Sequence record: LC727698.1
Reading direction: 5' to 3' (one strand)
Length of the DNA stretch: 64,000 nucleotides
Both the position numbers and the translations under genes were made by a program. Within the stretch, counting starts at the first letter, position 1. Each line of letters opens with the position of its first letter. The notes under the pieces were generated by a model. That model ran no database searches, had not been told where the DNA came from, and worked only from the letters and a program-made list of their open reading frames with translations. Below, in pieces: positions 16,458 to 44,688 of this stretch.

Positions 16458-16781
16458 ATGGTCTCTGTTAATATACCGTTAATTGTATCTAATAAAATAT
16501 ATAAAATGGAATTTGAATATAGCAAGGATGATGTGTTATATTTGTGTATGTATAGTGACAATAATACATATCTACATAATATAATAGTCAATACAGAATT
16601 CTCTATGCTTTTTGTTCAATGTATGGGTAAAACTATACCACTAGAATCAATATTATATATCCAGTCAAATATAAAAACAATAAGTGTGACTGATGACTAT
16701 GGCTGTATAACCCTACATAACGATACATTTTGTTTATGTACTGGATATTTTCAGGAAAAAGTTAAATTTTTTGCAGATTAA
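16458..16781 (+). CDS. Small paralog-array protein (divergent)
   Basis: Internal ILYIQSNIKTI motif. Confidence 0.5.
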   Translation: MVSVNIPLIVSNKIYKMEFEYSKDDVLYLCMYSDNNTYLHNIIVNTEFSMLFVQCMGKTIPLESILYIQSNIKTISVTDDYGCITLHNDTFCLCTGYFQEKVKFFAD

Positions 16782-16783
16782 AT

Positions 16784-17110
16784 ATGAATGAACAAATTAT
16801 ATTATGTTTCCAAGCATGCGTTAATAAATTTGTCTACTTAGGAAACCCAAAAATAAGATTATTTGGAATCGGTAAAAGTGTCAAGATATCTGCACGGAAT
16901 TATAACAATATGGATATAGGTTCGTTTAGCAGTAATTTGAAATTTTTATTATATATCGATAGTATCCAAGATGTTGGAATATATGATGAAAATTTTATAT
17001 TTTATATATCAATAAATTCAGACGAAATATCATTTTTGGGTTCTACAGGTACAGCACAAGTAGATACTGAACTTGGAATTACTATATTCTTTACCCGCAC
17101 CAAAACATAA
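16784..17110 (+). CDS. Small paralog-array protein (divergent)
   Basis: MNEQIILCFQACV... and LLYIDSIQD units. Confidence 0.45.
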   Translation: MNEQIILCFQACVNKFVYLGNPKIRLFGIGKSVKISARNYNNMDIGSFSSNLKFLLYIDSIQDVGIYDENFIFYISINSDEISFLGSTGTAQVDTELGITIFFTRTKT

Positions 17111-17119
17111 TCTTAAATT

Positions 17120-17377
17120 ATGATATTCATTGCACAGCGACTGTTACATAAAATAACATATAATAAAAATGCAATACTGTTCGGTTGTTTTAACAGTGGA
17201 TATTTTTTAATTAATAGAAAAAGTGGTATTGGATTCTTATTTACAGATATATGTATGAAACGAATAAAATGCATTTATTTCATATTATATATTTCGCGTA
17301 ATACTAATACTATAGGCAAAGATGCAATCTATATTAAAGATTTAGAACTATTAAGAGCAATGCACATACTTCGATGA
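17120..17377 (+). CDS. Small paralog-array protein (divergent)
   Basis: MIFIAQRLLHKI and ILYISRNTNTI units. Confidence 0.5.
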   Translation: MIFIAQRLLHKITYNKNAILFGCFNSGYFLINRKSGIGFLFTDICMKRIKCIYFILYISRNTNTIGKDAIYIKDLELLRAMHILR

Positions 17378-17682
17378 ATATAAATTTAATACTGATACTT
17401 CAAAGATGTACGTCTGTAATAGGAGGATTCCAGCGCGCCGGCGCAACACTTATTCATATTTATAGTGATTCTAATTTATCTGCTATAATGACGTTACACA
17501 AAAGAAGATGCAAATGCATTGTATTTACTGACATTTTGTTTAACGACATTAAAGACGGTTCTATAGATATCATTATCTATATAAGTAAGAATGCAAACCG
17601 AATACCCTATAACTTTGCCTACATAGAAACATCTGTTACAGATGAATCTTCTGTTCCTTTACACGATATGACAGGAATATGA
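17374..17682 (+). CDS. Small paralog-array protein (divergent)
   Basis: LILILQRCTSVI and IIYISKNANRI units. Confidence 0.5.
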   Translation: MNINLILILQRCTSVIGGFQRAGATLIHIYSDSNLSAIMTLHKRRCKCIVFTDILFNDIKDGSIDIIIYISKNANRIPYNFAYIETSVTDESSVPLHDMTGI

Positions 17683-18164
17683 ATAATCCTATATATAATT
17701 TTATACTTGCAAGACGAATATGCAAACGGTATAGAATAAAATTCAATCCATTTGTAAAATTAGATACAGGAAGTTTACAAATAGATAACGTAGGTAAAAT
17801 AACAGTTAACGTAAATGTATTTAATAGTAATTTTATACCTATATTTTGGCACGAAATAGGGCATTATATTCATCATACATTAGTTAATTATAAAATTTAT
17901 TTAGATTACTATGCTCCTATTTGTCCTACACACGGGTATCTTTTATATAATAAGACACAAGATTTTTATAAATGTCTTTATTCCGAAATGTTTGCTAGTA
18001 GATTTGCACTAAAGGTGTGCGGAGCAAAACATAAGAACTACCTCATAAAATGTTTTCACACATACACTTCTGCTGCATTTAAAACCAACATCGCCAGCCA
18101 ATCTAAATTTACAAGATTTGTAGATTTTGTAGAAAAACTTTCTAGAAAATTAGATAGATATTAA
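17679..18164 (+). CDS. HExxH metallopeptidase-like protein (IrrE/ImmA-like)
   Basis: FWHEIGHYIH and downstream EMFASRFA. Confidence 0.6.
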   Translation: MNNPIYNFILARRICKRYRIKFNPFVKLDTGSLQIDNVGKITVNVNVFNSNFIPIFWHEIGHYIHHTLVNYKIYLDYYAPICPTHGYLLYNKTQDFYKCLYSEMFASRFALKVCGAKHKNYLIKCFHTYTSAAFKTNIASQSKFTRFVDFVEKLSRKLDRY

Positions 18165-18499
18165 TATATGAACACTTATGATTATATAAGACAGAATAAC
18201 GACAAAATAGTTACATTTGAAACTATATTACATATAAGCAGTAGAAGTAGAGTAATAAGACTGCATTACAATTTTAGTTATATTTTACAACGAATGTCTC
18301 TAATTCTACCAGATAAACGTGGGAACCTGGTAATTAAATACTTTTATTACCGAAGTGTATGAAATATATTTCGTGTATATTATATAACTTTCTGTTCACT
18401 ACTTATATAAAAGTACATTCCAAAAATATTGTAAATATAGTATAGTTTTCATATAAAAGTATGCGTATAATTTGCACATATAACGCAATAACGCAGCAA

Positions 18500-18667: not shown

Positions 18668-18744
18668 CCCTCGGTAGCTCAGTTGGTTAGAGCGCGCGAC
18701 TCATAATCGCTAGGTCACTGGTTCGAATCCAGTTCGAGGGACCA
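18668..18744 (+). tRNA. tRNA-Ile2(CAT), lysidine-type
   Basis: Cloverleaf with encoded CCA; GCGA-CTCATAA-TCGC anticodon arm as in E. coli ileX; A73. Confidence 0.85.
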
Positions 18745-18766
18745 ATTTTAAGATGTTGTGCTTTTA

Positions 18767-18851
18767 GCCCGAGTGGTGAAATTGGTAGACACAGGAGACT
18801 TAAAATCTCCCGCTTCACAGCGTACCGGTTCGAGTCCGGTCTCGGGTACCA
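18767..18851 (+). tRNA. tRNA-Leu(TAA)
   Basis: Long variable arm, GGAGA-CTTAAAA-TCTCC, CCA. Confidence 0.95.
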
Positions 18852-18901
18852 AACAAAAGATATAAATACTTAACAAGATAGGAAACTATTCTAAAATTAA
18901 A

Positions 18902-18977
18902 TGGCTAGTAGCTCAGTTGGTAGAGCAAATGACTGTTAATCATTGGGTCGTAGGTTCGAGTCCTACCTAGCCAGCCA
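18902..18977 (+). tRNA. tRNA-Asn(GTT)
   Basis: AATGA-CTGTTAA-TCATT, G73, CCA. Confidence 0.95.
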
Positions 18978-19003
18978 ATTACACTTTGTTGTATATTCAA
19001 TAT

Positions 19004-19079
<76 letters not shown>

Positions 19080-19148
19080 ATTTTAAATAACAGTTGTATC
19101 TAAAGAGATACAATAGTCTAAATAAAATATTCATATAATGTTTCAAAC

Positions 19149-19225
19149 GGGACTTTAGCTCAGTTGGTTAGAGCGCGCGACTCATAATCGCTAGGTCACT
19201 GGTTCGAATCCAGTAAGTCCCACCA
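19149..19225 (+). tRNA. tRNA-Ile2(CAT), second copy with different acceptor stem
   Basis: D, anticodon and T arms identical to 18668-18744; acceptor GGGACTT/AAGTCCC; CCA. Confidence 0.85.
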
Positions 19226-19275
19226 ATTTTTATATACAAATCAAACTATACTTAAACTATATAATGAATGAATAT

Positions 19276-19360
19276 GCCCGGTTGGTGAAATCGGTAGACA
19301 CAGGAGACTTAAAATCTCCCGACGAAAGTCGTGCCAGTTCGAGTCTGGCACCGGGCACCA
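19276..19360 (+). tRNA. tRNA-Leu(TAA), second copy
   Basis: Same anticodon arm as 18767; different acceptor, variable and T arms; CCA. Confidence 0.95.
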
Positions 19361-19369
19361 AACTCCTAC

Positions 19370-19399
19370 AAAAGGAACATATTATAGTATGTTCCTTTT
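19370..19399 (+). terminator. Terminator after first tRNA cluster
   Basis: AAAAGGAACATA-TTATAG-TATGTTCCTTTT. Confidence 0.75.
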
Positions 19400-19586
19400 T
19401 TATTATGATATTTTTATTATGAATGAAATAATGCATATATCTGCCAACACATACGTAATAGAATATCGCGTATTAAACAAGTTAGTAGTCACTATAAAAA
19501 ATAATAGATCTTTTACATTATGGGTACATTTTGATATCGGTACATTTTCTATGGCATGGAAATACAATGCAATATAGAATTAAAAA

Positions 19587-19748
19587 ATGAAATACATTAT
19601 TAATTTACAATACTCAACAGAAGTAATATATATGCCGTGTTTCAACATAATATCGTTATGCGATAATAGATCTGTTACTATCCTTTCTATTACTATGATA
19701 TTTAAGATAAGATACTATTTGCATCCGATGTTCCGTTATATTCTATAA
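19587..19748 (+). CDS. Single-unit member of small paralog array (53 aa, below ORF-track cutoff)
   Basis: MKYIINLQYSTEVI N-terminus (hand translation). Confidence 0.4.
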   Translation: MKYIINLQYSTEVIYMPCFNIISLCDNRSVTILSITMIFKIRYYLHPMFRYIL

Positions 19749-20224
19749 TACATAATATTTTTATTGTAACAAATACCAGAAGTTCTTAGATAATATATAG
19801 CAATTCTGTTTATTATCGATATTGCGGTATACTTAGTATTTCTTATTAACCGTATTACATAGAATAAAGAATGGAAAAAATTTTAACTATTTCACATAAA
19901 ACATTAATATGTGAACTGTCGTTATTAAAATGGTCGAAATCCATAGTTTGTGCATATTCTGGCGAAATAATATGGTATGTTCGGTTGCATAAGAAATGTT
20001 ATGTAGTACAGCTAAGATGATAATGAACTGTATTTTTTCCTATTCGTACTATTTAGAACGCATCGTATGTCATGCAAAAATCTACAAAGGGTTTGTAGTC
20101 AGTAAAAATACTTTTTGTGAGAAATCCGTAATAGCTTTATACTTAATAAATAGTGGTAGTTATTTTCATAAATGTTACGTCGATCATTACTTAATTGTAT
20201 AGATATATATTTTAATAAAAATAG

Positions 20225-20253
20225 TTGACCAAACGCACAAAACAGTATATAAT
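20225..20253 (+). promoter_or_regulatory. Sigma70 promoter upstream of tRNA-Arg
   Basis: TTGACC-N17-TATAAT. Confidence 0.8.
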
Positions 20254-20304
20254 GTTACGCATACAAAGCATTATTACAAAGCTATCATTAGTTGCACAAG
20301 ATAT

Positions 20305-20381
20305 GCGCTCGTAGCTCAGCTGGATAGAGCATCCGCCTTCTAAGCGGATGGTCGGGGGTTCGAATCCCTCCGGGCGCGCCA
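20305..20381 (+). tRNA. tRNA-Arg(TCT)
   Basis: TCCGC-CTTCTAA-GCGGA, CCA. Confidence 0.95.
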
Positions 20382-20402
20382 ATTTTTAAAGAGTGTTGTG
20401 TT

Positions 20403-20636
20403 ATGCAAACAATAAGATTTGACATAAGACTTCTCGATTATAGTAAGAAACAAGGCTTTTGCTGTATAGGTAAAGATATATTCGAAGTGTGCAGAAAAAC
20501 TCGGATCAGTCCAGGACAGTTAAACTTACGAAAAGATTATATAGGACGAGTATTAGTATGGATTGATTCGAACTATAATCTGCACAATACCTGTTTAGTA
20601 GGCTGGACTCGGTATAAAAAATTTATTCATAATTAA
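20403..20636 (+). CDS. Hypothetical protein
   Basis: 77-aa ORF directly after tRNA-Arg. Confidence 0.5.
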   Translation: MQTIRFDIRLLDYSKKQGFCCIGKDIFEVCRKTRISPGQLNLRKDYIGRVLVWIDSNYNLHNTCLVGWTRYKKFIHN

Positions 20637-20640
20637 TAAT

Positions 20641-20883
20641 ATGAATAGATGCAAAGAACATCTACAATACAGAACAATCAAAAAGCATACATTAACTTGT
20701 AGGAAATGCAAAGAGTTATCGTTACAAATAAAATTATTTTGGCTTCAACAACAAGCATTCAGTATTAGAACTGATACTAGCGGAATATACATATTCGATA
20801 ATAAATATAATTCTATTTACGTATACTCTGTGGCTTGGTATAATACAGAATTATACGGTAAAGGGACAATAATTTTAGAATAA
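20641..20883 (+). CDS. Hypothetical protein
   Basis: 80-aa ORF with a CxxC. Confidence 0.4.
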   Translation: MNRCKEHLQYRTIKKHTLTCRKCKELSLQIKLFWLQQQAFSIRTDTSGIYIFDNKYNSIYVYSVAWYNTELYGKGTIILE

Positions 20884-20911
20884 ACATGTATATATAAGAG
20901 TACCTCAATTA

Positions 20912-21244
20912 ATGAATAATTATTCTAATGATACAGATATTCTAAAATGGATAAAGCGTAACAATAGAAAAAATGCACGTCTAATTTCATATATAGACGG
21001 AATATATAATATTGTTTATTTCGATGGCGGAAAAGCAAGAGTTGGCATAGTAAAAGACAATATGCACTGCAGATACGGAATACATAGTCGTGGATCTATG
21101 TATTCGAAAGATATAATGAGCCTGTGGCAATCTAGTACAGGTTCGTGTTCGCCTGATGATGTAAAGATTATGCAAGATTATCTAGACGATAAATGTATGC
21201 TTCCGGAATTTGATTTTTCTCAGATTAAAAATTTAAAATGGTAA
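20912..21244 (+). CDS. Hypothetical protein
   Basis: 110-aa ORF with normal protein-like composition. Confidence 0.6.
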   Translation: MNNYSNDTDILKWIKRNNRKNARLISYIDGIYNIVYFDGGKARVGIVKDNMHCRYGIHSRGSMYSKDIMSLWQSSTGSCSPDDVKIMQDYLDDKCMLPEFDFSQIKNLKW

Positions 21245-21267
21245 ATAATATAACAATATAGTTTTAT

Positions 21268-21344
21268 CGCAGGGTATGCAAGAGGTCTAAGCAGAAAGGC
21301 TCATAACCTTTTTATCGTGGGTTCGAATCCCACCCCTGCAACCA
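21268..21344 (+). tRNA. tRNA-fMet(CAT) (initiator-like)
   Basis: C1:A72 mismatch, CGCAGGG/CCCTGCA-A-CCA ends like bacterial fMet; anticodon stem AAAGG/CCTTT has only two of the three G-C pairs. Confidence 0.8.
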
Positions 21345-21353
21345 GTTTTATAT

Positions 21354-21430
21354 CTAGGCATAGCTCAAGTAGGTAGAGCACTTGCTTTGGGAGCAAGAGG
21401 TTGGGGATTCGAGGTCTCCTGCCTAGACCA
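21354..21430 (+). tRNA. tRNA-Pro(TGG)
   Basis: CTTGC-TTTGGGA-GCAAG, CCA. Confidence 0.9.
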
Positions 21431-21439
21431 ATTTACTAT

Positions 21440-21512
21440 GCAGTCCTAGCTCAATTGGTAGAGCACTGTCCTTCCAAGTCAGATGTTACGGGTTCGAGTC
21501 CCGTGGGCTGCT
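21440..21512 (+). tRNA. tRNA-Gly(TCC), CCA not encoded
   Basis: CTGTC-CTTCCAA-GTCAG, U73; followed by CAA. Confidence 0.9.
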
Positions 21513-22269
21513 CAATATTCTAATATAATTGATTAGTATATCTAATCGATGGTTAGTGTAGTGGATGCATATGGAAATATAGAAGTATTAGTTATGCCAT
21601 CTAACATAACGGTACTAGAATTACAGGCATATACAACAGAGCTATTGTATGTAAGAAAATCTCATTGTTTATGTTTATACCTTCCTGATATAGGAAATTA
21701 TGCTTTATGGTTTTTTTAGACAGATAGGATAAAAATATAAATTGATATTATTCTGTTTAAGGAACTAGAATTAAATGGCAGGTTGCTTATTTAGACTAGA
21801 TTTGTCTATTTTTCGTGAAAATGTATATAGTATTTCTAGTTTGTCTTATACAAAATCTATATGCATTTCAATAAAAACTAAACCGACAAGCAATAGAAAA
21901 CAATTAGAAATATATGTTGTAGATAAAACAACTGATTTTTTAGTTGCATGCAAGTATTTTTAGCTTATCTATTTTGACTTGCCTTTAAAATAAATAACCA
22001 TTATATATTTGATATAACAACTATTCTAAATAGAAATAAAACCATAAATACACATAATAACGGTGTGGATTTATGGAAAACATATTTAGGATATCTATTA
22101 ATGCTAACGAAGGTATTATACGAATATCCCCTACTTACTTTTTTAATGGTGTTTTTTATTCAAAGCATTTGAATATTTTTATAATAGATCCCGACGGATA
22201 TCTAATAAGAAAAATATATACTTGTAGTACATTCTTATGATGATTTCTTTTAAATATACAAAATAACAT

Positions 22270-22298
22270 TTGACAAAAGTATAATTATTTCGTATAAT
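22270..22298 (+). promoter_or_regulatory. Consensus sigma70 promoter
   Basis: TTGACA-N17-TATAAT upstream of ORF 22330 and the Ser tRNAs. Confidence 0.85.
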
Positions 22299-22329
22299 AA
22301 GTGTATAAAATAACAAAAGAGAATTTTAA

Positions 22330-22689
22330 ATGATTTCCAAAATTCAAATTGTATACGGAATATATCTTCCTACTGCCGATGCAAAAATTATATACGAAGA
22401 CTCAGAATACGAATCTAATAAAATAAATAAAAATATTAGATTATTTGCAAATGATGATTATTTAGAAGATAAGATTTTAGAAAATAAGGAATTCGAAGAT
22501 AATCCCTATGTTCCGCACTTTTATGGTATCTTTTGTAAAGAATTCGATAATGACCAAAGTGCATACTTATATAATGTTCCTAAATCTTTTATAGATGAAT
22601 ATAATAATGTAGCTCCAGCTATTTTAGCTAGACTCGGTTATTTATATAGAGTTGCAGGAAAACAACCTTGTAGAATAATTTACGAATAG
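22330..22689 (+). CDS. Hypothetical acidic protein
   Basis: 119-aa ORF between promoter and tRNA-Ser. Confidence 0.65.
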   Translation: MISKIQIVYGIYLPTADAKIIYEDSEYESNKINKNIRLFANDDYLEDKILENKEFEDNPYVPHFYGIFCKEFDNDQSAYLYNVPKSFIDEYNNVAPAILARLGYLYRVAGKQPCRIIYE

Positions 22690-22703
22690 AATTAACTAGT
22701 TTT

Positions 22704-22793
22704 GGAGAGGTGATAGAGTCTGGTTTATTATACTAGTCTTGAAAACTAGCGGATCGAAAGGTCCCGTGGGTTCGAATCCCACCCTCTCCGCCA
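22704..22793 (+). tRNA. tRNA-Ser(TGA)
   Basis: Long variable arm, CTAGT-CTTGAAA-ACTAG, G73, CCA. Confidence 0.95.
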
Positions 22794-22798
22794 AATAT

Positions 22799-22888
22799 AG
22801 ATACTTGACCGAGTGGCTTAAGGTGCTTCCCTGCTAAGGAAGTGAGTTTGAAAAAGCTCCGTAGGTTCGAATCCTACAGTATCTGCCA
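22799..22888 (+). tRNA. tRNA-Ser(GCT)
   Basis: Long variable arm, CTTCC-CTGCTAA-GGAAG, G73, CCA. Confidence 0.95.
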
Positions 22889-33151: not shown

Positions 33152-33372
33152 ATATCATACCATTAATTTTAATTAGTGTATACTAGTTATTGTGACACTA
33201 TTAAATATGTCAATTAGATAAAATAAATTATTAATGAAAAATCTATTTCCTACCGGATGCATATTTAATATATTGGTATTATCTTATCACACAGATACAA
33301 TATATGCTGCATGTTACTCAGATTGTCGTGTTATTGCACTAAACAGTTATTATACATACTATATACCTTTAA

Positions 33373-33633: not shown

Positions 33634-33664
33634 CTAGTTGTGTTAATTAGGATAACTATACTTA

Positions 33665-34236: not shown

Positions 34237-34304
34237 CTTTTTCAGTTGCTATAATATGCACAATGTGCAATAATAAAAACAATGTGCAATTGTGAATAAA
34301 ATAT

Positions 34305-34604
34305 ATGAATATTATTATTAACATTCAAGAATCGACATCCGAAATCTTCTTTGACACATACTACATCACGTTAACGTCAAGTTTAGGCGGTCATGTTCTT
34401 TCGATAAACCGAAGAACAGGAAAAGGCGCAATTATACTTCATAATATAAAGTTAGATCACATCTATCCTATTATACTATTACAGAACGCAACTGTATCAC
34501 TTGTTGTATGGGGTGCTGTAGACATTAAAGTATCATTTAAAGATATATACGATGAATACATCTTCCTTGCTATAGGTAGAAGGCATTATTCTGATTATGC
34601 ATAA
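34305..34604 (+). CDS. Small paralog-array protein
   Basis: MNIIINIQESTSEI and IILLQNATVSL. Confidence 0.6.
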   Translation: MNIIINIQESTSEIFFDTYYITLTSSLGGHVLSINRRTGKGAIILHNIKLDHIYPIILLQNATVSLVVWGAVDIKVSFKDIYDEYIFLAIGRRHYSDYA

Positions 34605-34860
34605 AATTTATTATGACGAAATTTTAGAAATATCTAAAAAAGCTAGATTAATTGTAAATTACTCTGGCATCGTTTCTATATACACAAAATCTTCTAATTA
34701 TTATAATATAAATTATAATTTTTATAGTAATCCATTTAATCAGTGGAATAGGGCAATATTTATAGCATCTAAACAATGTGGACACATAGCATTTTCTAGT
34801 AACCGGATGCGTATATTAACTGATAAAAATATATTGTGGTATTATAGTACTCTTCTATAA
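34597..34860 (+). CDS. Small paralog-array protein
   Basis: ILEISKKARLI and IFIASKQCGHI. Confidence 0.5.
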   Translation: MHKIYYDEILEISKKARLIVNYSGIVSIYTKSSNYYNINYNFYSNPFNQWNRAIFIASKQCGHIAFSSNRMRILTDKNILWYYSTLL

Positions 34861-34875
34861 GGTATAGATCGAAAA

Positions 34876-35178
34876 ATGGAAATACCTAATGACAAGTGTA
34901 TGTTGTTAATATTTCTGAGTAGTGTCTCCGATACTATACACATAGAAATCAGTTTTAGAAAAAGAATTAGAAAATATTTGCACACACTAAAAATATACAA
35001 AGAAGATAACATTTGCATATTTATAAATGGCATACTACTATTTAAAAAAGATATATGTAACGATATAATAATTCCTATTTTGATACAATCGAACACAAGA
35101 TCTATATCACTGCATAACAACTTCTTAGAAATATTTTCTAACAGATATTATTTGATGTTATTTAGAAAAATGTCTTAA
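34876..35178 (+). CDS. Small paralog-array protein
   Basis: LIFLSSVSDTI and ILIQSNTRSI. Confidence 0.55.
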   Translation: MEIPNDKCMLLIFLSSVSDTIHIEISFRKRIRKYLHTLKIYKEDNICIFINGILLFKKDICNDIIIPILIQSNTRSISLHNNFLEIFSNRYYLMLFRKMS

Positions 35179-35192
35179 ATAGGAAAAAATGC

Positions 35193-35444
35193 ATGATTGT
35201 TATACTTCTTTCACACTTTACACGTGAACTAAATGCAGAATTTAATGAATTAGAACTTACTGTGTATGGTAATAGATTAGCGCAAATATATCCAACAGCA
35301 TTTATAGATACTAACATTCTATGGCATTATATGAGTGAATCTGATTTCTTACTATTTTATATTTCTAATAATGCAAAAACGATAAAATTAAACCATTCAC
35401 ACCGAATATTATTATATAACTCTCCCATACCGCACTATATTTAA
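35193..35444 (+). CDS. Small paralog-array protein
   Basis: MIVILLSHFTREL and LFYISNNAKTI. Confidence 0.55.
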   Translation: MIVILLSHFTRELNAEFNELELTVYGNRLAQIYPTAFIDTNILWHYMSESDFLLFYISNNAKTIKLNHSHRILLYNSPIPHYI

Positions 35445-35476
35445 AGAGATAAGTATGTGAACTATCATTTAAATAG

Positions 35477-35845
35477 TTGTTGTACAGAAACTACATTATT
35501 AAACTCTTTTTTAATAAGCAGGTTAATGTCCGTCTAAACCCTATGTGCAACCTACCATTTATTATATCAAATAATTCCTACACACTAACCTATGGACCAG
35601 ATAGAACGATGACAGGAGCAGGCATATACATTGCTAATATATACGGATTTGTGTTTCTATACTCAGTTGTTACTATTTCTAATTTTCAAATATGTTTTAG
35701 TATGCTTAACGAAATAGATCCTTTGTATTTGCAATACGAATGCGATTCAATAAAAACAATAAACACAAAAATGTATTATAGACTAAATGTCAATTCATTA
35801 CTTAATACAATGATATGTAAAGAATATTATGAATTTAATATTTGA
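35477..35845 (+). CDS. Small paralog-array protein
   Basis: FIISNNSYTL and LYLQYECDSI. Confidence 0.5.
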   Translation: MLYRNYIIKLFFNKQVNVRLNPMCNLPFIISNNSYTLTYGPDRTMTGAGIYIANIYGFVFLYSVVTISNFQICFSMLNEIDPLYLQYECDSIKTINTKMYYRLNVNSLLNTMICKEYYEFNI

Positions 35846-36113
35846 ATTATTAAGAAACACTAGTAAAATCATACCGTATGATGGTCTGAATGCTGTTAGA
35901 TTTATTCTTGTAAATACTGATTATATAAAAGTAGCATCTTTTTGTTTATCATTTTCTACATGGACCTGCCGTACATTTTTAAGTATAAACCAGTTTCAAA
36001 TGTCAGAATCTACGTTAGTTATCATATCTAATAAAATAAAGAAGATCAAAAGAGTAAAAAAATCATACGCTTTAGTTTTTGACGAATCATATATTCTGTT
36101 GAAAATCAAATGA
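35829..36113 (+). CDS. Small paralog-array protein
   Basis: MNLIFELLRNTSKI and LVIISNKIKKI. Confidence 0.55.
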   Translation: MNLIFELLRNTSKIIPYDGLNAVRFILVNTDYIKVASFCLSFSTWTCRTFLSINQFQMSESTLVIISNKIKKIKRVKKSYALVFDESYILLKIK

Positions 36114-36364
36114 TAATACATATCTCACATTTAACACATATAATAAATGCATATTCTAAATATATAATCGTCACTAATAAAGCTAATGAAATTATACTTT
36201 GCAATTACATATATAACCAAACTAAAATTTACATTAACAAAGTATTACCAAGTATCGACTTAATCTGTTATATTCAACATAACACAAAAACAATTAGTTA
36301 TCCCATTGTAAATAGCCATTTTCTATTATATCCATATCTTTGCAATAATGCCTTGGTTGTATAA
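36110..36364 (+). CDS. Small paralog-array protein
   Basis: MIIHISHLTHII and ICYIQHNTKTI. Confidence 0.6.
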   Translation: MIIHISHLTHIINAYSKYIIVTNKANEIILCNYIYNQTKIYINKVLPSIDLICYIQHNTKTISYPIVNSHFLLYPYLCNNALVV

Positions 36365-36366
36365 TT

Positions 36367-36648
36367 ATGGATTTTATTTTCCTACTACAACATAACACTT
36401 CTATTATATTATATCGTAATAGTATTATAGAATTATACACAGAAGACGAAATGCCAGTAATAGACATAGATATAACAAATTCTATGTTCATATATCTAGA
36501 TATTTTTAATGACAAAACTGCAATACTCTATCTACAACAAAATACACACAGTATAGGTATAGAATCATCAAATTCTTATTATATGATAAGAATGAGAAAT
36601 ATGTACCATAGAAACGTTTATTATATTATAACACATGGACTATATTAA
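36367..36648 (+). CDS. Small paralog-array protein (canonical)
   Basis: MDFIFLLQHNTSII and ILYLQQNTHSI. Confidence 0.7.
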   Translation: MDFIFLLQHNTSIILYRNSIIELYTEDEMPVIDIDITNSMFIYLDIFNDKTAILYLQQNTHSIGIESSNSYYMIRMRNMYHRNVYYIITHGLY

Positions 36649-36919
36649 ACTTATCTCCGCAGAAGTAAATCAAATTAAAAAATCCACCCATTCCGGCGGC
36701 ACCCGTCACGGCTTAACACTATATAACGTAGATGACCAACCTATAATAGAAATAAAGATCCAAAAAATAATATCCCGTGCATATGTGCGTGCAAACTACG
36801 ATAAGTTGTGTAATGAAATCTGCATTCTTTATATACAAAGCCAAACAACTTTAATATCTACCACACGGAACTCACTAGTAATCTTTACTTCCCACTATAT
36901 AGTTCACTCTATCATATGA
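36635..36919 (+). CDS. Small paralog-array protein (canonical)
   Basis: MDYIKLISAEVNQI and ILYIQSQTTLI. Confidence 0.7.
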   Translation: MDYIKLISAEVNQIKKSTHSGGTRHGLTLYNVDDQPIIEIKIQKIISRAYVRANYDKLCNEICILYIQSQTTLISTTRNSLVIFTSHYIVHSII

Positions 36920-37194
36920 ACCTAATATATGCACTGCAACGTAAAACTAGATATATATCCCAATTTGATACTACTTATCGTTTAATTAACTCAGATAGAA
37001 AATGCTTTTATCTTATAACACGCAAGAACAAAAAGACCATAGTAGACATAGACTATAATGTCTTTAATGATATTTTCGGTATATTACATTTACAGTCTAA
37101 AACACATATACTACAACGTTCATACTACCTAATAAAAATATATGATGTATGTACGGATTTAATATTTTTTATATACCACCATAACCATAAATGA
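36916..37194 (+). CDS. Small paralog-array protein (canonical)
   Basis: MNLIYALQRKTRYI and ILHLQSKTHIL. Confidence 0.7.
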   Translation: MNLIYALQRKTRYISQFDTTYRLINSDRKCFYLITRKNKKTIVDIDYNVFNDIFGILHLQSKTHILQRSYYLIKIYDVCTDLIFFIYHHNHK

Positions 37195-37472
37195 AATTTA
37201 TTATAACATTACAATCATACACAACTACAATACAGTTTCTAACTAATGATTTTATATTATATTCTGATAGAAATAAATTATTAGAATTAGGTATATACAA
37301 TAACAAATTCAACTGTTACATACATATCAATAATTTTAATAATAACAATATAATCATGTGTTATCTTCAGCATATAATTTATACAATACACATTCATCCC
37401 TTTGTTTTATCTATGTGTAATAGTAATTGGTTATCAGTTAATACAAAATGTTATTCAAGAAGACTTTATTAA
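37191..37472 (+). CDS. Small paralog-array protein (canonical)
   Basis: MKFIITLQSYTTTI and MCYLQHIIYTI. Confidence 0.7.
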   Translation: MKFIITLQSYTTTIQFLTNDFILYSDRNKLLELGIYNNKFNCYIHINNFNNNNIIMCYLQHIIYTIHIHPFVLSMCNSNWLSVNTKCYSRRLY

Positions 37473-37512
37473 AGTAATGAAGATGAATGATAGAAATCAC
37501 TACACTATAACT

Positions 37513-37793
37513 AATGAGTGATAATACTCTAATAGATAGAAACTATAGTGTAACAACCAATGAGTGATAATACTAATACTGATAGATATAGCTATAGTAT
37601 ACCAATAATGAGTGATACTAATAGAAGCTATAGTGTACAAATAATGAGTGAATTATGTAGTACATATTTCGGTGAATACTGATATAATACCAATAGATAG
37701 TGATACTAATAGATATCAATACTAATACTAATATTGATAGATAGCTATAGTGTACAAATAATGAGTGAAATAGGTAGTACATATTTCGGTGAA
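37513..37793. repeat. Imperfect iteron-like direct repeats (putative origin)
   Basis: AATGAGTGA at 37513, 37559, 37607, 37643, 37760; CTATAGT four times; a ~50-nt unit GCTATAGTGTACAAATAATGAGTGAA..GTAGTACATATTTCGGTGAA at 37627-37676 and 37744-37793. Confidence 0.85.
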
Positions 37794-38180
37794 CCCTAAC
37801 ATCACCAAAGAAAGAAGGACCAAAATTTTGGAAATCTTGCTCTATAGGTCCCATTCATTTTCTTCCCAGTTACTTTTATATTCTTTCAGTTTCTAGCCAT
37901 TTCTAACCATTTTTATAGATTTTTTTTGGAAAAATCCGTTTTCTGCTATATAGGGACCTTCTTATAAAATATAAGTTCTTTTTCAATAAAAAATATTTTT
38001 TTTGAAAATTTCCAATTCTTGCTATATAGGCCGGTTTCATTATATATCCCCATTTGCATAACATATACGGAATATAGTATGCTATACGTATATAAACCGT
38101 GACTCTAGACAACTCACTTACTGTACGCTTGTTAATATAATTCCATTTCGTAGTATAACGTATATATAGGAAAACTAGTT

Positions 38181-38450
38181 ATGGATCTGATACTATTTCT
38201 TCAACATAATACTGTAGAGATGGACTATAGTGAATGGTACGTTCGTCTTAACAACAAGAATGAAAAGCATATAGCTATGATTACAGGTAACGGTCTTAGA
38301 CTGTATTATAGAAATATCAATAGCTTACTTGGTATTCTTCATTTACAATACTGTAATTATAATTTTTTCATGCATACGGACAATTATATTTCTTTTACTT
38401 TTGCTAATAATAATAGGTTTGTACATGAAATACATGTTGATTTGAAATAA
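38181..38450 (+). CDS. Small paralog-array protein (canonical)
   Basis: MDLILFLQHNTVEM and ILHLQYCNYNF. Confidence 0.7.
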   Translation: MDLILFLQHNTVEMDYSEWYVRLNNKNEKHIAMITGNGLRLYYRNINSLLGILHLQYCNYNFFMHTDNYISFTFANNNRFVHEIHVDLK

Positions 38451-38453
38451 TAT

Positions 38454-38777
38454 ATGGATTTCATACTATTACTTCAATCTCAATGTCATGAGATTGTATA
38501 TACCAAACAAATGATTGATATGCTTAATGCGCATGATAATAGGCAGTTCGTATATGGAATTACGTTGCCTATGGGGAGAAAACATGTGTCATATAGGGCA
38601 TATTGTTTGTATAATAATATATGTGATGTGATAGGTTTATTACATATGCAATCCATTACATCATTAATAGAAGTTAACCATTTTAAATCAGTTTTTGGTA
38701 AAAAAGATATTATTGTTAATATGAGGTTTGTTAACGGTTATCTTCAATATGTTATAGTATCTAATATATGGACTTAA
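38454..38777 (+). CDS. Small paralog-array protein (canonical)
   Basis: MDFILLLQSQCHEI and LLHMQSITSLI. Confidence 0.7.
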   Translation: MDFILLLQSQCHEIVYTKQMIDMLNAHDNRQFVYGITLPMGRKHVSYRAYCLYNNICDVIGLLHMQSITSLIEVNHFKSVFGKKDIIVNMRFVNGYLQYVIVSNIWT

Positions 38778-39052
38778 TATTATTATTTCAGTCTCGTTGT
38801 TATAAGATTTGGTATTCAGATTATATTATAGATATGATCGACTATAGTGATTATACTATAGTATCATTACTACGCCCGCCGAATGGGCGTATGTATGCCT
38901 ATTGTTCGTGTAACAATATAAACAACGAAATTAGTATAATGCATTTGCAGAATAGCATACATTCATTACAAATAAGTTATAGTACCCGTTCTATAATGTG
39001 TCGTATGACTAATGTGTATGAAGATCTAATTCAATATATTTGTATACTTTAG
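38768..39052 (+). CDS. Small paralog-array protein (canonical)
   Basis: MDLILLFQSRCYKI and IMHLQNSIHSL. Confidence 0.7.
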   Translation: MDLILLFQSRCYKIWYSDYIIDMIDYSDYTIVSLLRPPNGRMYAYCSCNNINNEISIMHLQNSIHSLQISYSTRSIMCRMTNVYEDLIQYICIL

Positions 39053-39330
39053 TAATGTATTTTATCTTGTTTATACAGAAATTGTGTTGTTCGATTAGAA
39101 GGGCTTCGCATGGATTCGATATTTTTGATACAAATGAAGTAGCATATTCATTAATAGATCATCATGGTTTCAGTATGAAACATTTTGTTTCATACTCTGT
39201 TATAAATGATGTAATAGGAATTATACATTTACAAGTGCATACAAATAAGTTTTATTTTCTTAATGAAAAACATCAAATGGATATGATTTGTTTTCTAGAT
39301 AGTAAAGGCGGTCATTTTTTTAGTTTATAG
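39040..39330 (+). CDS. Small paralog-array protein (canonical)
   Basis: MYFILFIQKLCCSI and IIHLQVHTNKF. Confidence 0.65.
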   Translation: MYTLVMYFILFIQKLCCSIRRASHGFDIFDTNEVAYSLIDHHGFSMKHFVSYSVINDVIGIIHLQVHTNKFYFLNEKHQMDMICFLDSKGGHFFSL

Positions 39331-39342
39331 AGGACGGAATTT

Positions 39343-39606
39343 GTGTTATTAATATTAATGCTTCAGCGTAATGTCGAATGGATTCTTTATACTGATTGTG
39401 AAATTCGACTTGTTCTGCCCGATTATAACACGTTATATCGTTTTCTAAATCAGATACAGAAAATTAATGGGTATCTAAATTGCCATGCTAGTAATGACAT
39501 TGTAGGTATGTTTTATTTACAGTACAATTGTGATACTATATCATTTAATAGATTTGATGAATTTATGATACTAAACCACAATGGCGTAATAATTTTTGGC
39601 TGGTGA
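39343..39606 (+). CDS. Small paralog-array protein (canonical)
   Basis: MLLILMLQRNVEWI and MFYLQYNCDTI. Confidence 0.65.
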   Translation: MLLILMLQRNVEWILYTDCEIRLVLPDYNTLYRFLNQIQKINGYLNCHASNDIVGMFYLQYNCDTISFNRFDEFMILNHNGVIIFGW

Positions 39607-39902
39607 CTAGTATGGATATTATATTGATCCTTAGCAGTGAAGTTATAAGAATACAAGGTTGTTTTTATGATATAGAAACTTTACAAATAAGGTTCTTCAA
39701 TAAATACGACTCAATATATTTTTGTAATAAAATGGGAGGATTTGTTAACTATAAAACATTTCCCAATGAACTATTAAGTATAATTCATTTGCAGCAGAAT
39801 ACACATAGGTTGATAACACACAGTAAATGTATATTTTTTGATAGTGTAGATTTTATTTCTATTCACTGGGAGACTTTGTTTGACACAAACGAATATGTAT
39901 AA
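39603..39902 (+). CDS. Small paralog-array protein (canonical)
   Basis: MDIILILSSEVIRI and IIHLQQNTHRL. Confidence 0.65.
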   Translation: MTSMDIILILSSEVIRIQGCFYDIETLQIRFFNKYDSIYFCNKMGGFVNYKTFPNELLSIIHLQQNTHRLITHSKCIFFDSVDFISIHWETLFDTNEYV

Positions 39903-40146
39903 TGATATAAATTATATATTACTAATTAGTAACCAGTCTAAATATATTTCGTTGAAGGCACTTGGATTAACTGTAAAAACACGTGAACCAAGGTTAACTC
40001 ATTATATTATATTTTAAATATGAACGAAGAATATGATATATTATATTTGTCTAACAATACTATGCAAATAACATTTCGTTTTTCAGTATATTGTTTTTAT
40101 GATAAAACTCGTAGTATTATATATTGTCAATAAGACAGAAATATAA

Positions 40147-40461
40147 ATGGATTTAATATTAACACTTCAGCATAAAACTGTGCTAATATCACAGTTTAGT
40201 GCATTATTTGTATTTCAAAATATAAACAGTGATACTATATTTTGTTTGGATATAAGTAGACATGTATATTATTTCGAAATAATATTCAGGTTATATAATA
40301 ATAAGAATGGCATGGTGTATTTGCAACATGCCATTAATTCTATTAAGTTTACCTTTAGTTTACAATATCATACAATTCGTGGATATTCTAGTATACCATC
40401 TATATATATGTATGATAAAAAATATGCTATTGTACACGTACCATATGTTAGGAATATTTAA
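40147..40461 (+). CDS. Small paralog-array protein (canonical)
   Basis: MDLILTLQHKTVLI and MVYLQHAINSI. Confidence 0.7.
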   Translation: MDLILTLQHKTVLISQFSALFVFQNINSDTIFCLDISRHVYYFEIIFRLYNNKNGMVYLQHAINSIKFTFSLQYHTIRGYSSIPSIYMYDKKYAIVHVPYVRNI

Positions 40462-40760
40462 TGGATCTTATATTATACATTCAGTACAGTGCTCATAGAA
40501 TAGAAACTGTTTATAAATCATATCTATTATATAATAAACATTCGCTTTATTACAGACTGTCTGTATATAAGAGATTATTAATACCATCAGGTAGTAAATC
40601 ATATGCAAGGGCTTCGGCTGAATATTCTGCTATTACAGACAAAATAGGAATTATACACTTACAATCGAAAACACACGCAATATTATTTGTTATGGATGGT
40701 TGTATGTGCATTCACGACAAATCGTATCAAACACTCCATTATATTATACCAAAGTCATAA
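40461..40760 (+). CDS. Small paralog-array protein (canonical)
   Basis: MDLILYIQYSAHRI and IIHLQSKTHAI. Confidence 0.7.
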   Translation: MDLILYIQYSAHRIETVYKSYLLYNKHSLYYRLSVYKRLLIPSGSKSYARASAEYSAITDKIGIIHLQSKTHAILFVMDGCMCIHDKSYQTLHYIIPKS

Positions 40761-42131
40761 TGTTCATAAGTTTTATTCCGCCTGTTGCAATGTTGATACG
40801 ACTACAATCAAATCTACATATTATCTGTTTTGATTCTATTTATGATAGTATAGTGTTTTGTGATAAAGACTACGACGAAATACATTGCTGCTTATGGTAG
40901 CGTGTTTGCATTTAACGCAAAAACATGTTATACAGTATTGTTTGTTGAGTATTTTGACATTGTTGTTTCTAAAAATCTTTTATATAAAGGATTAATATGC
41001 ATAATATATTTAAATTATCATATTGTACAAATATGTTTAAATTTAAAATATTATGGGATCAAAAAGTATACCTATGCTCGTTTATGTCATTGCGGTATAC
41101 TACCCTATATATTTCTGCAGGTCGTATCAGATAAATGGTAACAAATATATTAGAATTAATGTATGTATGTCACCATACATATAATATAACAACTGACAGC
41201 TACTATAACATTTTCTTCTTAAATAAAAATAATAAAATTATCTTTGTTGTGTATTAAAACAAATGGGAATATTTCTCTTATCACGCAATACTTGCTATAT
41301 TTGTGTTATACATGTCAGACGTATTGTATACAAGATTAAGATGTATGACAGACACGGCAATTATGTGTTTACAATTAATGTTATCTAAGAACATATTAAA
41401 TTATATAGAATTTGGTTGTATGTAATACAGTTTAATAATGGCAACAGATATTGATAAAATAACATACATTTCATTTAACTCATGCTATATATCAGTTAAT
41501 CGTTTTAGTGTTATTATATATTATGAGTACGGTAGATTGATTTTATATGATGATACCCCCGGGCTTATATAAGAACGTATTCTACATACAGTATAATGTG
41601 CGTCATATAAGCATATATTATTTTGATGCATGCGAATGTAATATATTACAGGTAGAATGCAATAATTTTCTTACTCTAACATATAAATTAAATGAAAAAA
41701 CCAATAAGTAATATAGTTGAATTATCGCTTAATACGCACCGGTTTAATACCAATTATATAACTAGTGCTCATTGTTTAGTATTTTATAATGCGTCGTCAT
41801 ATCCTATACATTATGTTCGTTTACACACAAACAAGCGTTAACACTTATGTCGCCGGTATCAATTCATAATATAGTTTGTATTCAACACTATCTTAATAGA
41901 TGGTATACTAGAATATCCCCAACAGGGATTAATGTGTATTCAGATTCATATGTTAGAATTAGAATAAATGTTCATAAATAAAAATATTATAAATCACGAT
42001 ATACATTATGATATGTTGCAGGTATCTTCGTGCGCACATACAATAGATTCATCGCTATGTAGTACATATCTATTGGCATGCATTTATAATAGTAATGAAA
42101 AAATTATTATAATTAGTGTTGCATATCTAAG

Positions 42132-42290
42132 ATGAATGGTATAAAAGATATAATAGAATTTTCATCGCATGCATACGAAATATGTGCAAATACAGCAAGA
42201 CTTAGAGATATAGTATACTACTCGATACTCATAAAGGCAAAAGACGGTCTTGCATTTTATATGGTAGACTCGTTTGCATATATAACATGA
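42132..42290 (+). CDS. Single-unit array member (52 aa)
   Basis: MNGIKDIIEFSSHAYEI (hand translation). Confidence 0.4.
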   Translation: MNGIKDIIEFSSHAYEICANTARLRDIVYYSILIKAKDGLAFYMVDSFAYIT

Positions 42291-43546
42291 CCAGTATCCT
42301 TGAATGTTCTTACAATACTTCTAATATTATGTTTCGTTTTTGTAAAAACATTAACCTTTTAGTTGTGAACTTTCTAAACAAAAATGCTAACATACATTTC
42401 ATTGTAATAGTTATATACAATTACTAATACATAGGAGAGTAATAAATGAATAGAGCAGCAAAGAAAAATGTTTCTATATTTGTTATTCAGAATCATACTT
42501 TTAGAGTTCATGTTGTGCGATATGATTCTGCGAGAATTTCAATATATCTCTCACTTGTACATAATTGCGTTGCATCTTAAGAACTATATCTGCATAATGT
42601 AGGTTACATTTGCATGTATAGGATTATCTTTCATATAATATATGCTTATTAACTATACGACATGTATTGAATTACTTTATAGTATTGTATGATTCGTAAA
42701 AATATAGTTCTAATATCACACAACACGTCAAAAATAATATTAGAAAGAAGAACAAGTAAAGTATTACGTGTTTCTATGTTTAAATCAATCGGAAAATACT
42801 ACTACCATTATTATACGGCGTGTGGAAATATATAATGCAAGATCATCATTTCACTACACTGTTGTATATGTCTAATCGTGCAGATAGAATAAAGATTTTC
42901 CGACAGCCTTCCTGTCTTATTGTATATATTAAGTCAGGTATGTTATATATTAATAAACAATTCTTAAAATGTTAGAATATATAGATACTCTCAAATATAA
43001 TTACATTTTAACTGTATGCAGCGGTGTAGAGTCTATATCATTTGAATCATTTACTAGATCAGTAATATCAGTTTCCATAATATATAATAATATTACTATC
43101 TTTCCGTACCAAACTACACGAACTATACTGTATGGTGTATAATCTTATTTTTATTTCTTTTAATGTTTCTTTAATTAGTTTTTCTATTTTTAATAAAACA
43201 TTTGAAGTTTATATTTATGGAAAAATGTTATTGGTAATTTATTATACAGGACTGCATATATGTTAGATATATTGCTACGGTTCCAACGCAGAGTGGATAC
43301 AATTAAGGTGGAGTTAATATGGCGTCACTTGCATTTTTATGAAAAAGCCGGCGAGGAGTTAGAGTTATTTCATATTATATTTCTGCCGCCCGATCACCGA
43401 AGTATTAATTAACAAAAACAAGTTGTATTTTTCGGCATAAAAATTTATGAATAAAGATACAAACAAAGAATCACCTATTATTAAAGAATTATATTTTATA
43501 TTAAGATTGTAAGTAAAATAAAATACTTTTAGAATCTAAAACTAAA

Positions 43547-43696
43547 ATGATCGATTGGGTATTTAAATTGTCTGCTAGTTGCTACGAAATAGACGGACAA
43601 CACAGTGAGTCAATAAGAATATATAATTCATATTGTCTTTTAGGAACTATACAATGTTATTGTGCTCAGTTAAAAATAAATTTATATAAATTTTAA
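43547..43696 (+). CDS. Single-unit array member (49 aa)
   Basis: MIDWVFKLSASCYEI (hand translation). Confidence 0.45.
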   Translation: MIDWVFKLSASCYEIDGQHSESIRIYNSYCLLGTIQCYCAQLKINLYKF

Positions 43697-44024
43697 TATT
43701 GTGGGAAGAATTCTTTTAAATAGGCATACACTATATGAATGATCTATTACAATACCAACTCACATTATGTTCCATATCTTTGCAGAAAGCTCGTTTTAAG
43801 TCAGGCAATGTGTATTACATTCTAATTGAACGTAACGACAGCGGTAGGTATTCCCGAGATGTAAAAATACTTAAATGATATGCGTATATTTGTAATATCA
43901 CAAAATTGCATGACTATCAGACTTTTTTATCATACATATTTCATTAAAGATGTAAATTATGATTCAATTTGTGTATTATATAAAACGAATAGCAGAATTG
44001 TAATACATCCGAGTTTTACAGTAG

Positions 44025-44222
44025 ATGAATATATTCGATCTGTCTTATAATTCTTCATCTATTTTGATGAAATCGAATAGAATATACATTAGTAATGATA
44101 CCTATTATAATTATTCTGTAGGCGCTACATATGTATTACCTGCAATAACAAAATATATACATCAAACATTCTATGTAAACGCTGCAATATATAGATTTTT
44201 AGATACAGGTATACTAGTATGA
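44025..44222 (+). CDS. Array-like small protein
   Basis: MNIFDLSYNSSSI. Confidence 0.45.
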   Translation: MNIFDLSYNSSSILMKSNRIYISNDTYYNYSVGATYVLPAITKYIHQTFYVNAAIYRFLDTGILV

Positions 44223-44407
44223 AATTCAATATATTTAAATTGCAAAGAGGATGTCACTTTATAGATTGTCATTTTTATGACATTCTTAGATTTTCAAAAC
44301 CTACATATTTTCGAGATGCTGATAGAATAACTATATTTTCATTAATAGGTACTAATAGTATCAGAATTTACGAGGATATGTATAAAGGATATGCACAAAC
44401 CATATGA
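44219..44407 (+). CDS. Array-like small protein
   Basis: MKFNIFKLQRGCHFI. Confidence 0.5.
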   Translation: MKFNIFKLQRGCHFIDCHFYDILRFSKPTYFRDADRITIFSLIGTNSIRIYEDMYKGYAQTI

Positions 44408-44688
44408 TTGAAATATTAATATTTTCGAGTGCTAGTGATTATATTAGTATAAGACATGATATGGCACGGCTATATAATCTTAATGGTGTTAGTGAATTAA
44501 TATTTGTATCAAAACCATACAAATATATTATATTAACTAATTTAAAAAATCATATAGGTATATTCTGTATTTCAAATATAATAAGTGAAAGGGTGATGGG
44601 AGATATTACTAGTAACGAATGTTGGGCTTATCCTTGGCCTCCAGATACTGGCATAGATGTATATATTGATTTCCTGTATAAAAATTGA
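44404..44688 (+). CDS. Array-like small protein
   Basis: MIEILIFSSASDYI and IFCISNIISE. Confidence 0.5.
   Translation: MIEILIFSSASDYISIRHDMARLYNLNGVSELIFVSKPYKYIILTNLKNHIGIFCISNIISERVMGDITSNECWAYPWPPDTGIDVYIDFLYKN

Follow-up and report, generated by a model that had tools for sequence, protein, structure and literature searches.

Terminal multigene families are a known feature of large DNA viruses, exemplified by the host-range families of poxviruses and the multigene families of African swine fever virus, and the concept of a 'genomic accordion' is attached to them. Such families consist of dozens of co-oriented, divergent, small accessory paralogs at a genome end, and their members are gained, lost or disrupted between close strains. 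In phages, sets of early or host-takeover genes are known from terminal repeats, namely the pre-early genes of T5, the host-takeover module of SPO1 and the Tre genes of Kayvirus, where many small, function-unassigned genes of one strand lie at the start of a long direct terminal repeat and the phage uses the host RNA polymerase early. Here we describe an array of small paralogous genes that resembles both, at positions 16458-44688 of the last 64 kb of LC727698.1, the 284,544-bp genome of Pseudomonas phage sp. 30-3 (hereafter the window, 64,000 nucleotides, in whose coordinates positions are given unless another record is named). Its main body spans 31757-44688. Unlike the poxvirus and African swine fever virus families, this one belongs to a bacteriophage, has much smaller modules (45-55 amino acids) and shows no sequence relationship to them. 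The T5, SPO1 and Kayvirus sets are assembled mostly from genes that are not related to each other; in the present array almost every gene comes from a single family, half of the array falls outside the repeat, and only one member has documented early expression. Large viruses with a terminal multigene family are already known; the novelty lies in this particular family, in its tiny module, in its division into one-unit and two-unit genes and in the scale that it reaches in a phage. We tentatively read it as a genus-specific multigene family of small accessory binding proteins acting in the infected cell, a reading to which we give a little less than an even chance.

A full-length profile hidden Markov model (HMM) was seeded with 12 core open reading frames (ORFs) located at 36.3-40.8 kb and then run iteratively against the window's ORFs in all six frames. 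It converged on 28 ORFs at E<1e-3, all on the plus strand and 37-113 amino acids long; the minus strand gives 0 matches, and 1,220 composition-matched shuffles give 0-1. An HMM of the single unit detects 60-64 domains in 39-47 ORFs, where the minus strand again gives 0 and 10x shuffles give 0-1. An earlier reading of the window from its letters and translations (the original prediction) had proposed a large paralog array on the strength of a motif recurring within and between ORFs, and the HMM built from core members does unite these ORFs beyond their composition. The three proteins it quoted are present at 38181-38450, 38454-38777 and 40461-40760. The internal repeat is also borne out: with an HMM of the N-terminal halves, 15 of the 28 C-terminal halves score higher than any of 560 shuffles, hhalign of the N-half against the C-half profile gives E=8e-5 over the 22-column motif, and the two motifs of double-unit proteins lie 49-61 residues apart. 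The shared motif reads hydrophobic-I-L-x-L-Q/S-x-N-T-x-x-I and recurs mid-protein in the two-unit proteins. No column is invariant in the family, and the sole column above 90% conservation is Ile4. The predicted helix of the motif is rich in isoleucine and leucine, and its terminal position is Q (54%) or S (46%), never D or E.

The genes occur in two forms, with one copy (40-57 amino acids) or two tandem copies (85-113 amino acids) of the module. We estimate the family at about 45-50 genes that together occupy about 11 kb and make up roughly a tenth of the phage genes. Most single-unit genes are found at 40997-44407, where 21 mini-ORFs of 40-65 amino acids follow each other head to tail, each with the motif at its start. 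Membership of the single-unit ORFs is statistically weaker than that of the double-unit ORFs. When short ORFs are compared with HMMs built from double-unit genes, 9 of 26 are individually supported, which counts against their firm membership, whereas a leave-one-out HMM among the mini-ORFs scores 16 of 21 above at least 95 of 100 of their own shuffles (overall p=5e-12). We considered whether the mini-ORFs are split two-unit genes and rejected this, as N-like and C-like units do not alternate and the mini-ORFs resemble the N-terminal unit and have their own ATG. The predicted count of more than 40 paralogs is right only if the single-unit genes, including about 20 at 41-44.4 kb, are counted; the full-length HMM gives 28 ORFs. 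Outside the motif the sequences are very divergent, as had been claimed. Together these results support a true family of paralogs that share a short, conserved scaffold motif and diverge strongly in the rest of their sequence.

The paralogs are old: the closest pair in the genome is 34% identical over 76 amino acids, the nearest neighbour is the best match for 4 of 26 genes (2 are expected by chance), and the array of this genome holds no recent near-identical duplicates. The three sister phages examined have 34-39 members each and differ by insertions and deletions of whole genes. Paride carries an extra member about 65% identical to the ortholog of the gene at 36367 (L004:21388-21675), and 30-2 carries an extra family copy near 38 kb (L006:23300-23572); both are absent from the window and so show directly that genes have arisen or been lost within the genus. 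The family evolves by slow birth and death and is not an active accordion. The suggestion of an accordion-like family stands to the extent that gene content varies a little between strains, but the lack of recent near-identical copies means that this genome shows no sign of an ongoing accordion, unlike the poxvirus and African swine fever virus concept.

A genome-wide count confines the family to 16458-44688, with 0 members and no match at E<0.01 in the rest of the genome (221 kb, 1,342 ORFs, scanned locus by locus). Positions 36000-41000 are 100% identical to the 30-3 record and, outside this genome, 93-96% identical to the jumbo myoviruses PA5oct, MIJ3, Callisto, PAC2, Paride, Cassandra, Deifobo, Ettore and 30-2; the records of 30-3, 30-2, PA5oct, Paride and Cassandra are classified in the genus Wroclawvirus, family Arenbergviridae. 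A profile search of 5.8 billion proteins returned 17 matches, each from a PA5oct-like phage, encoded in the window or from a short metagenome contig, and the two metagenome contigs inspected are syntenic PA5oct-like contigs. An exhaustive HMMER search of 1.84 billion cluster representatives returned 26 matches, 24 of them family-sized (82-110 amino acids). The family therefore appears, from these searches, to be restricted to Wroclawvirus and PA5oct-like phages. The other two of the 26 matches, P0019 (801 amino acids) and P0035 (549 amino acids), were rejected as relatives because they are translated tandem satellites whose 8-13 near-identical repeats sum small motif scores; they illustrate how repetitive ORFs can build up spurious profile scores. 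No paralog family at this place is mentioned in the papers on PA5oct, MIJ3 and Paride or in a 2026 review of jumbo phages, the word 'paralog' is absent from the texts of the PA5oct and MIJ3 papers and of the review, and the Avs5 and Paride papers contain nothing on the array region.

The motif is conserved at the level of the protein and not of the DNA. Across 69 motif instances, information resides at codon positions 1 and 2 and is close to 0 bits at the third. At the Q/S position, glutamine is encoded by CAA as well as CAG, and serine by TCN as well as AGY codons. The reading frames are also far more open than expected. In the left main block (31757-37472; 18 tightly packed ORFs of at least 80 amino acids, mostly two-unit, HMM E 1e-10 to 9e-25), ORFs of at least 80 amino acids cover 91% of the plus strand and 9% of the minus strand. 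In the right main block (38181-40760; 8 two-unit and 2 one-unit ORFs, the latter at 39880-40017 and 40020-40133, HMM E 1e-14 to 7e-24), the corresponding values are 90% and 0%. Chance ORFs of this size cover 1% in dinucleotide shuffles of the main blocks. ORF coverage in the region of the mini-ORFs is 90% on the plus strand, 4% on the minus strand and 18% in shuffles.

We pooled the ratio of non-synonymous to synonymous substitution rates (dN/dS) from alignments of the region to three sister phages (Paride, Cassandra and 30-2). The two-unit family genes have an in-frame dN/dS of 0.46, with 0.64 and 0.94 in the two off-frames (dN 0.031), and the mini-ORFs 0.30, with 0.76 and 2.06 off-frame (dN 0.015). 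Nine neighbouring non-family genes have an in-frame value of 0.08, with 4.99 and 1.89 off-frame (dN 0.004). The three classes have a similar dS (0.05-0.07). Non-synonymous evolution in the family is about 7 times faster than in the neighbouring genes. The in-frame ratios of 0.30-0.46 are below the off-frame controls and not near 1, the value at which the original prediction would have failed, yet above those of the neighbours, so the family is protein-coding but under relaxed constraint. These data show that the ORFs do encode proteins, that selection keeps them open and that they evolve fast under relaxed purifying selection. Of the 37-kb region that was compared between the sister phages, the core of the array at 34000-38000 diverges most, with nucleotide identities of 92-95% versus 97-99% elsewhere. 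Individual genes differ widely in their ratio of non-synonymous to synonymous polymorphism (pN/pS), from 0.06 to above 1, with several members at 0.06-0.2.

Expression can be approached through PA5oct, which depends on the host RNA polymerase and whose early transcription comes almost exclusively from the Watson strand (PMC7318152). The array genes are co-oriented with these early genes. The genes named as highly transcribed early in PA5oct are gp34-gp105 and gp450 (PMC7318152). Mapped by coordinates to the PA5oct record, gp450 (EST35_0450) has its ortholog at 34305-34604 on the plus strand, within the left main block, preceded by a 69-bp gap with a sigma-70-like site at 34226-34255. A consensus scan for promoters and terminators is uninformative in this AT-rich DNA (159 sites versus 137 expected), and only sites in intergenic gaps were used.

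Two AlphaFold2 runs on alignments of paralogs and orthologs were made for two-unit members. Model 1 (38454-38777, 25 sequences) has a predicted local distance difference test score (pLDDT) of 67 and a predicted template modelling score (pTM) of 0.49; model 2 (36367-36648, 58 sequences) reaches a pLDDT of 73 and a pTM of 0.61. In both, the hydrophobic stretch of the motif is a short N-terminal helix that ends at the Q/S residue and is followed by an N-T turn, the x-x-I residues begin a strand, and each unit is a helix with 2-4 strands, repeated twice. The proteins are thus predicted to be alpha+beta, with the motif forming a helix and then a strand, which speaks against the purely beta-rich repeat that had been suggested. 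In the reading we prefer, the motif would be the buried N-terminal helix and first strand that form the common core of each module, leaving the other strands and loops free to diverge and to give each paralog its own binding surface. One-module proteins would probably pair and so reproduce the two-module fold. The family as a whole would then be a repertoire of accessory binders in the infected cell, serving host takeover or counter-defence, of which single members may be dispensable while the set is maintained. Dispensable members within a maintained set are typical of host-interaction or counter-defence repertoires. Between sister phages, 61 of 78 two-unit ortholog comparisons are intact, compared with 33 of 33 for control genes, so that individual members do get disrupted or lost.

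Several observations weigh against such a repertoire of working binders. Both AlphaFold2 models are of moderate confidence only, and no homolog was found in Pfam or PHROGs (searched with 10 and then 58 members) or by sequence search of the PDB. The amino-acid composition of the members is near that of random codons of the same base composition. Of the 27 two-unit genes only 9, and of the 21 mini-ORFs only 3, are preceded by a Shine-Dalgarno-like motif (controls: 11 of 30 other ORFs, and 9% at random positions). On the short timescale that separates the sister phages, motif codons show no significantly stronger constraint than other codons (p=0.17). Finally, gp2-gp33 of PA5oct, which correspond to the right half of the array, are not among the genes named as highly transcribed early (PMC7318152), so that most members may be weakly expressed.

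Much of this would be expected of a largely decaying family or 'gene nursery', an ancient expansion that is drifting, with very weak selection, and in which few members, such as the gp450 ortholog, are functional. The near-random composition, weak translation signals, disrupted orthologs (17 of the 78 two-unit comparisons, with 11 net frameshifts and 6 in-frame stops, versus 0 of 33 for control genes; counts only), spread of pN/pS up to values above 1 and absence of gp2-gp33 from the list of highly transcribed genes all fit this explanation. The relaxed constraint and the disruptions give some substance to the gene nursery already mentioned in the original prediction, but the maintenance of the ORFs and the deep conservation of the motif do not. 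ORFs fill 90% of one strand where chance ORFs of at least 80 amino acids cover 1%, the pooled in-frame dN/dS is below both off-frame controls with several members at low pN/pS, the motif persists in paralogs that are less than 30% identical, and 60 of 63 mini-ORF ortholog comparisons are intact (33 of 33 for control genes). We consider general decay unlikely, although it deserves to be taken seriously.

A more specific function is suggested by fold comparison, namely that the proteins are miniature 'double-wing' saddle-shaped DNA binders like the C-terminal domain (CTD) of T4 MotA. As sequence-specific modules they would redirect the host RNA polymerase, on which the phage relies throughout infection, or mark DNA. 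The MotA CTD has the shape of a saddle, the 'double wing', and is made up of three helices and six strands (PMC2988021). Model 2, the better of the two, likewise has three helices and six strands, and its best Foldseek match is 1kaf, the DNA-binding domain of T4 MotA (E 0.02, probability 0.99, template modelling score (TM) 0.49, 98 columns), followed by LAGLIDADG saddle domains (TM 0.42, E about 0.1). The two share a similar size and a two-fold pseudo-repeat, and the dependence of PA5oct on the host RNA polymerase (PMC7318152) would suit such a role. However, neither model has a Foldseek match at E<=0.001, so this best match is weak and below significance, and it is obtained with one of the two models only; model 1 gives different and also weak matches, to VOC/glyoxalase proteins (TM <=0.40, E >=0.2) and an uncharacterised phage protein.

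The likeness to MotA also finds no counterpart in sequence. Starting from T4 motA (NC_000866), we collected 87 homologs and built a profile of 83 MotA CTDs; hhalign of the family against this profile gives a probability of 0.1%, and 0.2% against T4 MotA alone, and Pfam MotCF (PF09158) has no match in 58 members even at E<=10. Given these negative profile-profile and Pfam tests, the likeness to MotA is a structural lead only. The net charge of the members ranges from -5 to +9, with many acidic, and offers no clear clue to DNA binding, and they have no equivalent of the N-terminal sigma-70-binding activation domain of T4 MotA, as the modules fill the whole 37-113 amino acids. We therefore regard the family as doubtful candidates for double-wing DNA binders. 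Should the models nevertheless be right, one could picture a library of about 45 saddle-shaped readers, one-module dimers and two-module monomers each with its own DNA or RNA site, that in combination would reprogramme transcription or tell the phage's own, possibly modified, DNA from that of the host; this elaboration of the models is somewhat less probable still.

The LAGLIDADG homing endonucleases offer a parallel in that they too have one- and two-motif forms and a conserved N-terminal helix in each module that is followed by beta strands. The module described here is half the size (motif spacing of 49-61 amino acids versus about 75-100 per motif domain), and its helix lacks small packing residues and ends in Q/S instead of an acidic catalytic residue; Pfam LAGLIDADG has no match among the 58 members. 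Modules of the VOC/glyoxalase/bleomycin-resistance type were considered and rejected because of the low scores of model 1 (TM <=0.40, E >=0.2) and because the family has no invariant column that could supply metal- or ligand-binding residues.

It is also conceivable that the ORFs are open only for the sake of ribosomes that trail the RNA polymerase across a long leader or spacer and prevent premature termination, or that they fill the head, their products being functionless. All family genes lie on one strand and are tightly packed, many with overlapping stop/start junctions, which together with the random-like composition is what this explanation expects. It also predicts that no residues are conserved and that in-frame dN/dS is near the off-frame values, whereas the motif is kept through synonymous codons and the in-frame dN/dS is the lowest of the three frames. 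We consider it very improbable, and the mere stuffer put forward as one option in the original prediction is contradicted by the same facts and by the maintenance of the ORFs.

The position of the motif at the extreme N-terminus, with a variable body after it, recalls the T4-type genes for variable internal proteins, and the products could be packaged in the virion by means of an N-terminal targeting signal. The motif, however, recurs mid-protein in the two-unit members. In the PA5oct record, a note of virion detection by ESI-MS/MS (tandem mass spectrometry with electrospray ionization) is found on none of EST35_0002-0033 or EST35_0442-0461 (as judged from the annotation only), while the neighbours EST35_0038, EST35_0048 and EST35_0051 carry it. 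We give very little credence to a role as internal proteins.

The array is less continuous than first described, as the stretch at 17.7-29.2 kb holds mostly tRNA genes and unrelated genes. The genes that lie between the parts of the array include 12 tRNA genes and those for a PP-loop tRNA(Ile)-lysidine synthetase (TilS), a DksA-type zinc finger protein, a GDSL hydrolase and an M23 peptidase. To the left of them, the full-length HMM detects an outlying block of four plus-strand ORFs at 16458-17682 (16458-16781, 16784-17110, 17120-17377 and 17374-17682), three with E 2e-10 to 6e-16 and one, 16784-17110, marginal (E 0.03). Two short plus-strand ORFs of 62 and 53 amino acids lie amid the tRNA genes at 19389-19748 and are single-unit matches (unit HMM, independent E-values (iE) of 3e-5 and 1e-7), of which the half-unit HMM backs only the first. 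Between TilS and the M23 peptidase are five degenerate members, also on the plus strand and identified by HMM or motif, at 29187-29534, 29746-30078, 30127-30468, 30441-30800 and 30950-31273; 29746-30078 has E 1.5e-7 and 29187-29534 a unit iE of 2e-5, and the other three are marginal or recognizable by motif only. At the right end, the mini-ORFs are followed by the last member of the array (44404-44688, plus strand, 94 amino acids, full-length HMM E 9e-16). The predicted decay of the motif outward from the centre is seen in HMM and BLAST scores, with the caveat that the seeds of the HMM came from the core.

The core of the array is split by a non-coding spacer of 708 bp (37473-38180) that contains degenerate iteron-like repeats, repeat families D1-D7 and tandem repeats. 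The left and right main blocks border this spacer, and the clearest copies, in the right block, do flank a repeat region at about 37.5 kb as had been stated. The last base of the PA5oct record corresponds to position 37802 and its position 1 to 37803. The annotation of PA5oct assigns its first 39,080 bp to a direct terminal repeat, on the grounds of doubled read coverage (PMC7318152). Because this record ends and starts inside the spacer, the clearest copies flank the left boundary of the PA5oct terminal repeat. Mapped from PA5oct and not from the ends of 30-3 itself, 38181-44688 lies inside the annotated terminal repeat and 16458-37472 outside it; on this PA5oct-based mapping, genes at 38181-44688 would be present twice per virion DNA. 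To the left of the boundary, 37488-37802 contains 6-7 degenerate copies of an iteron-like unit, and to its right, 37826-38030 contains a unit that ends in TTGCT(A/C)TATAGG, in two to three copies. Conceivable roles for the spacer repeats are those of a packaging or end-formation site, of an origin or of a cluster of promoters. Two minus-strand ORFs overlie the spacer (37618-37854, 78 amino acids, and 37903-38112, 69 amino acids) and are annotated as genes in PA5oct, Paride and Cassandra; judging from their low-complexity translations, they may not be real genes.

Pharokka annotates a repeat region labelled CRISPR (clustered regularly interspaced short palindromic repeats) at the centre of the array in Paride and Deifobo. 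We rejected a CRISPR array at the spacer, as the repeats are 65-90% identical, irregularly spaced by 22-201 bp and restricted to a separate patch of 0.3 kb, and the call looks like a false positive. An array of DNA-level repeats (iterons, promoters or CRISPR-like elements) that mimics a protein motif, for which this annotation might be cited, has a negligible chance of explaining the family, since the repeats called CRISPR are a separate degenerate patch in the non-coding spacer and the codon-position analysis of the motif refutes a DNA-level source.

G+C content is 25-30% across the array and 35-42% further right in the window, with a jump to 42% at 46-48 kb. The 12 tRNA genes amid the array region (18668-22888) comprise three with anticodon CAT, two Leu-TAA, Asn, Thr-TGT, Arg-TCT, Pro, Gly and two Ser, and an Rfam scan gave nothing besides these 12. 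TilS is encoded at 28467-29078. In the family, ATA accounts for 58% of isoleucine codons and AGA for 49% of arginine codons, and codons cognate to the phage tRNA set make up 33% in the family versus 24% in control genes. From this match in codon use, translation of the family may depend on the phage's own tRNAs.

Elsewhere in the LC727698 record, folE, queD, a 6-pyruvoyl-tetrahydropterin synthase and queE are annotated at 140131-143653 and 199122-199994 (record coordinates); these genes belong to a 7-deazaguanine pathway and hint at modification of DNA or tRNA. Homologs of ClpX, ClpP, ClpA and FtsH are annotated elsewhere in the genome as well. To the right of the array, a gene-poor stretch at 46150-46342 contains a terminator-like hairpin (46265-46291) as well as tandem repeats of 42-47 bp that match at 95-97%; by coordinates, this stretch maps near the highly transcribed 'ncRNA001' of PA5oct.

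One orphan family thus accounts for roughly a tenth of the genes in a lineage that is studied for therapy and for the killing of dormant Pseudomonas (PA5oct and Paride). If most members are drifting, the array would illustrate what amount of coding DNA under weak selection can be carried by a jumbo phage that packages by the headful. If instead the members are binders built on a shared scaffold, as we tentatively propose, the family would be to a phage what the terminal multigene families are to large eukaryotic viruses. It would then provide about 45 natural variants of a single tiny fold, and its one- and two-module genes, occurring side by side, would make it a clean case in which to study domain duplication and fusion.

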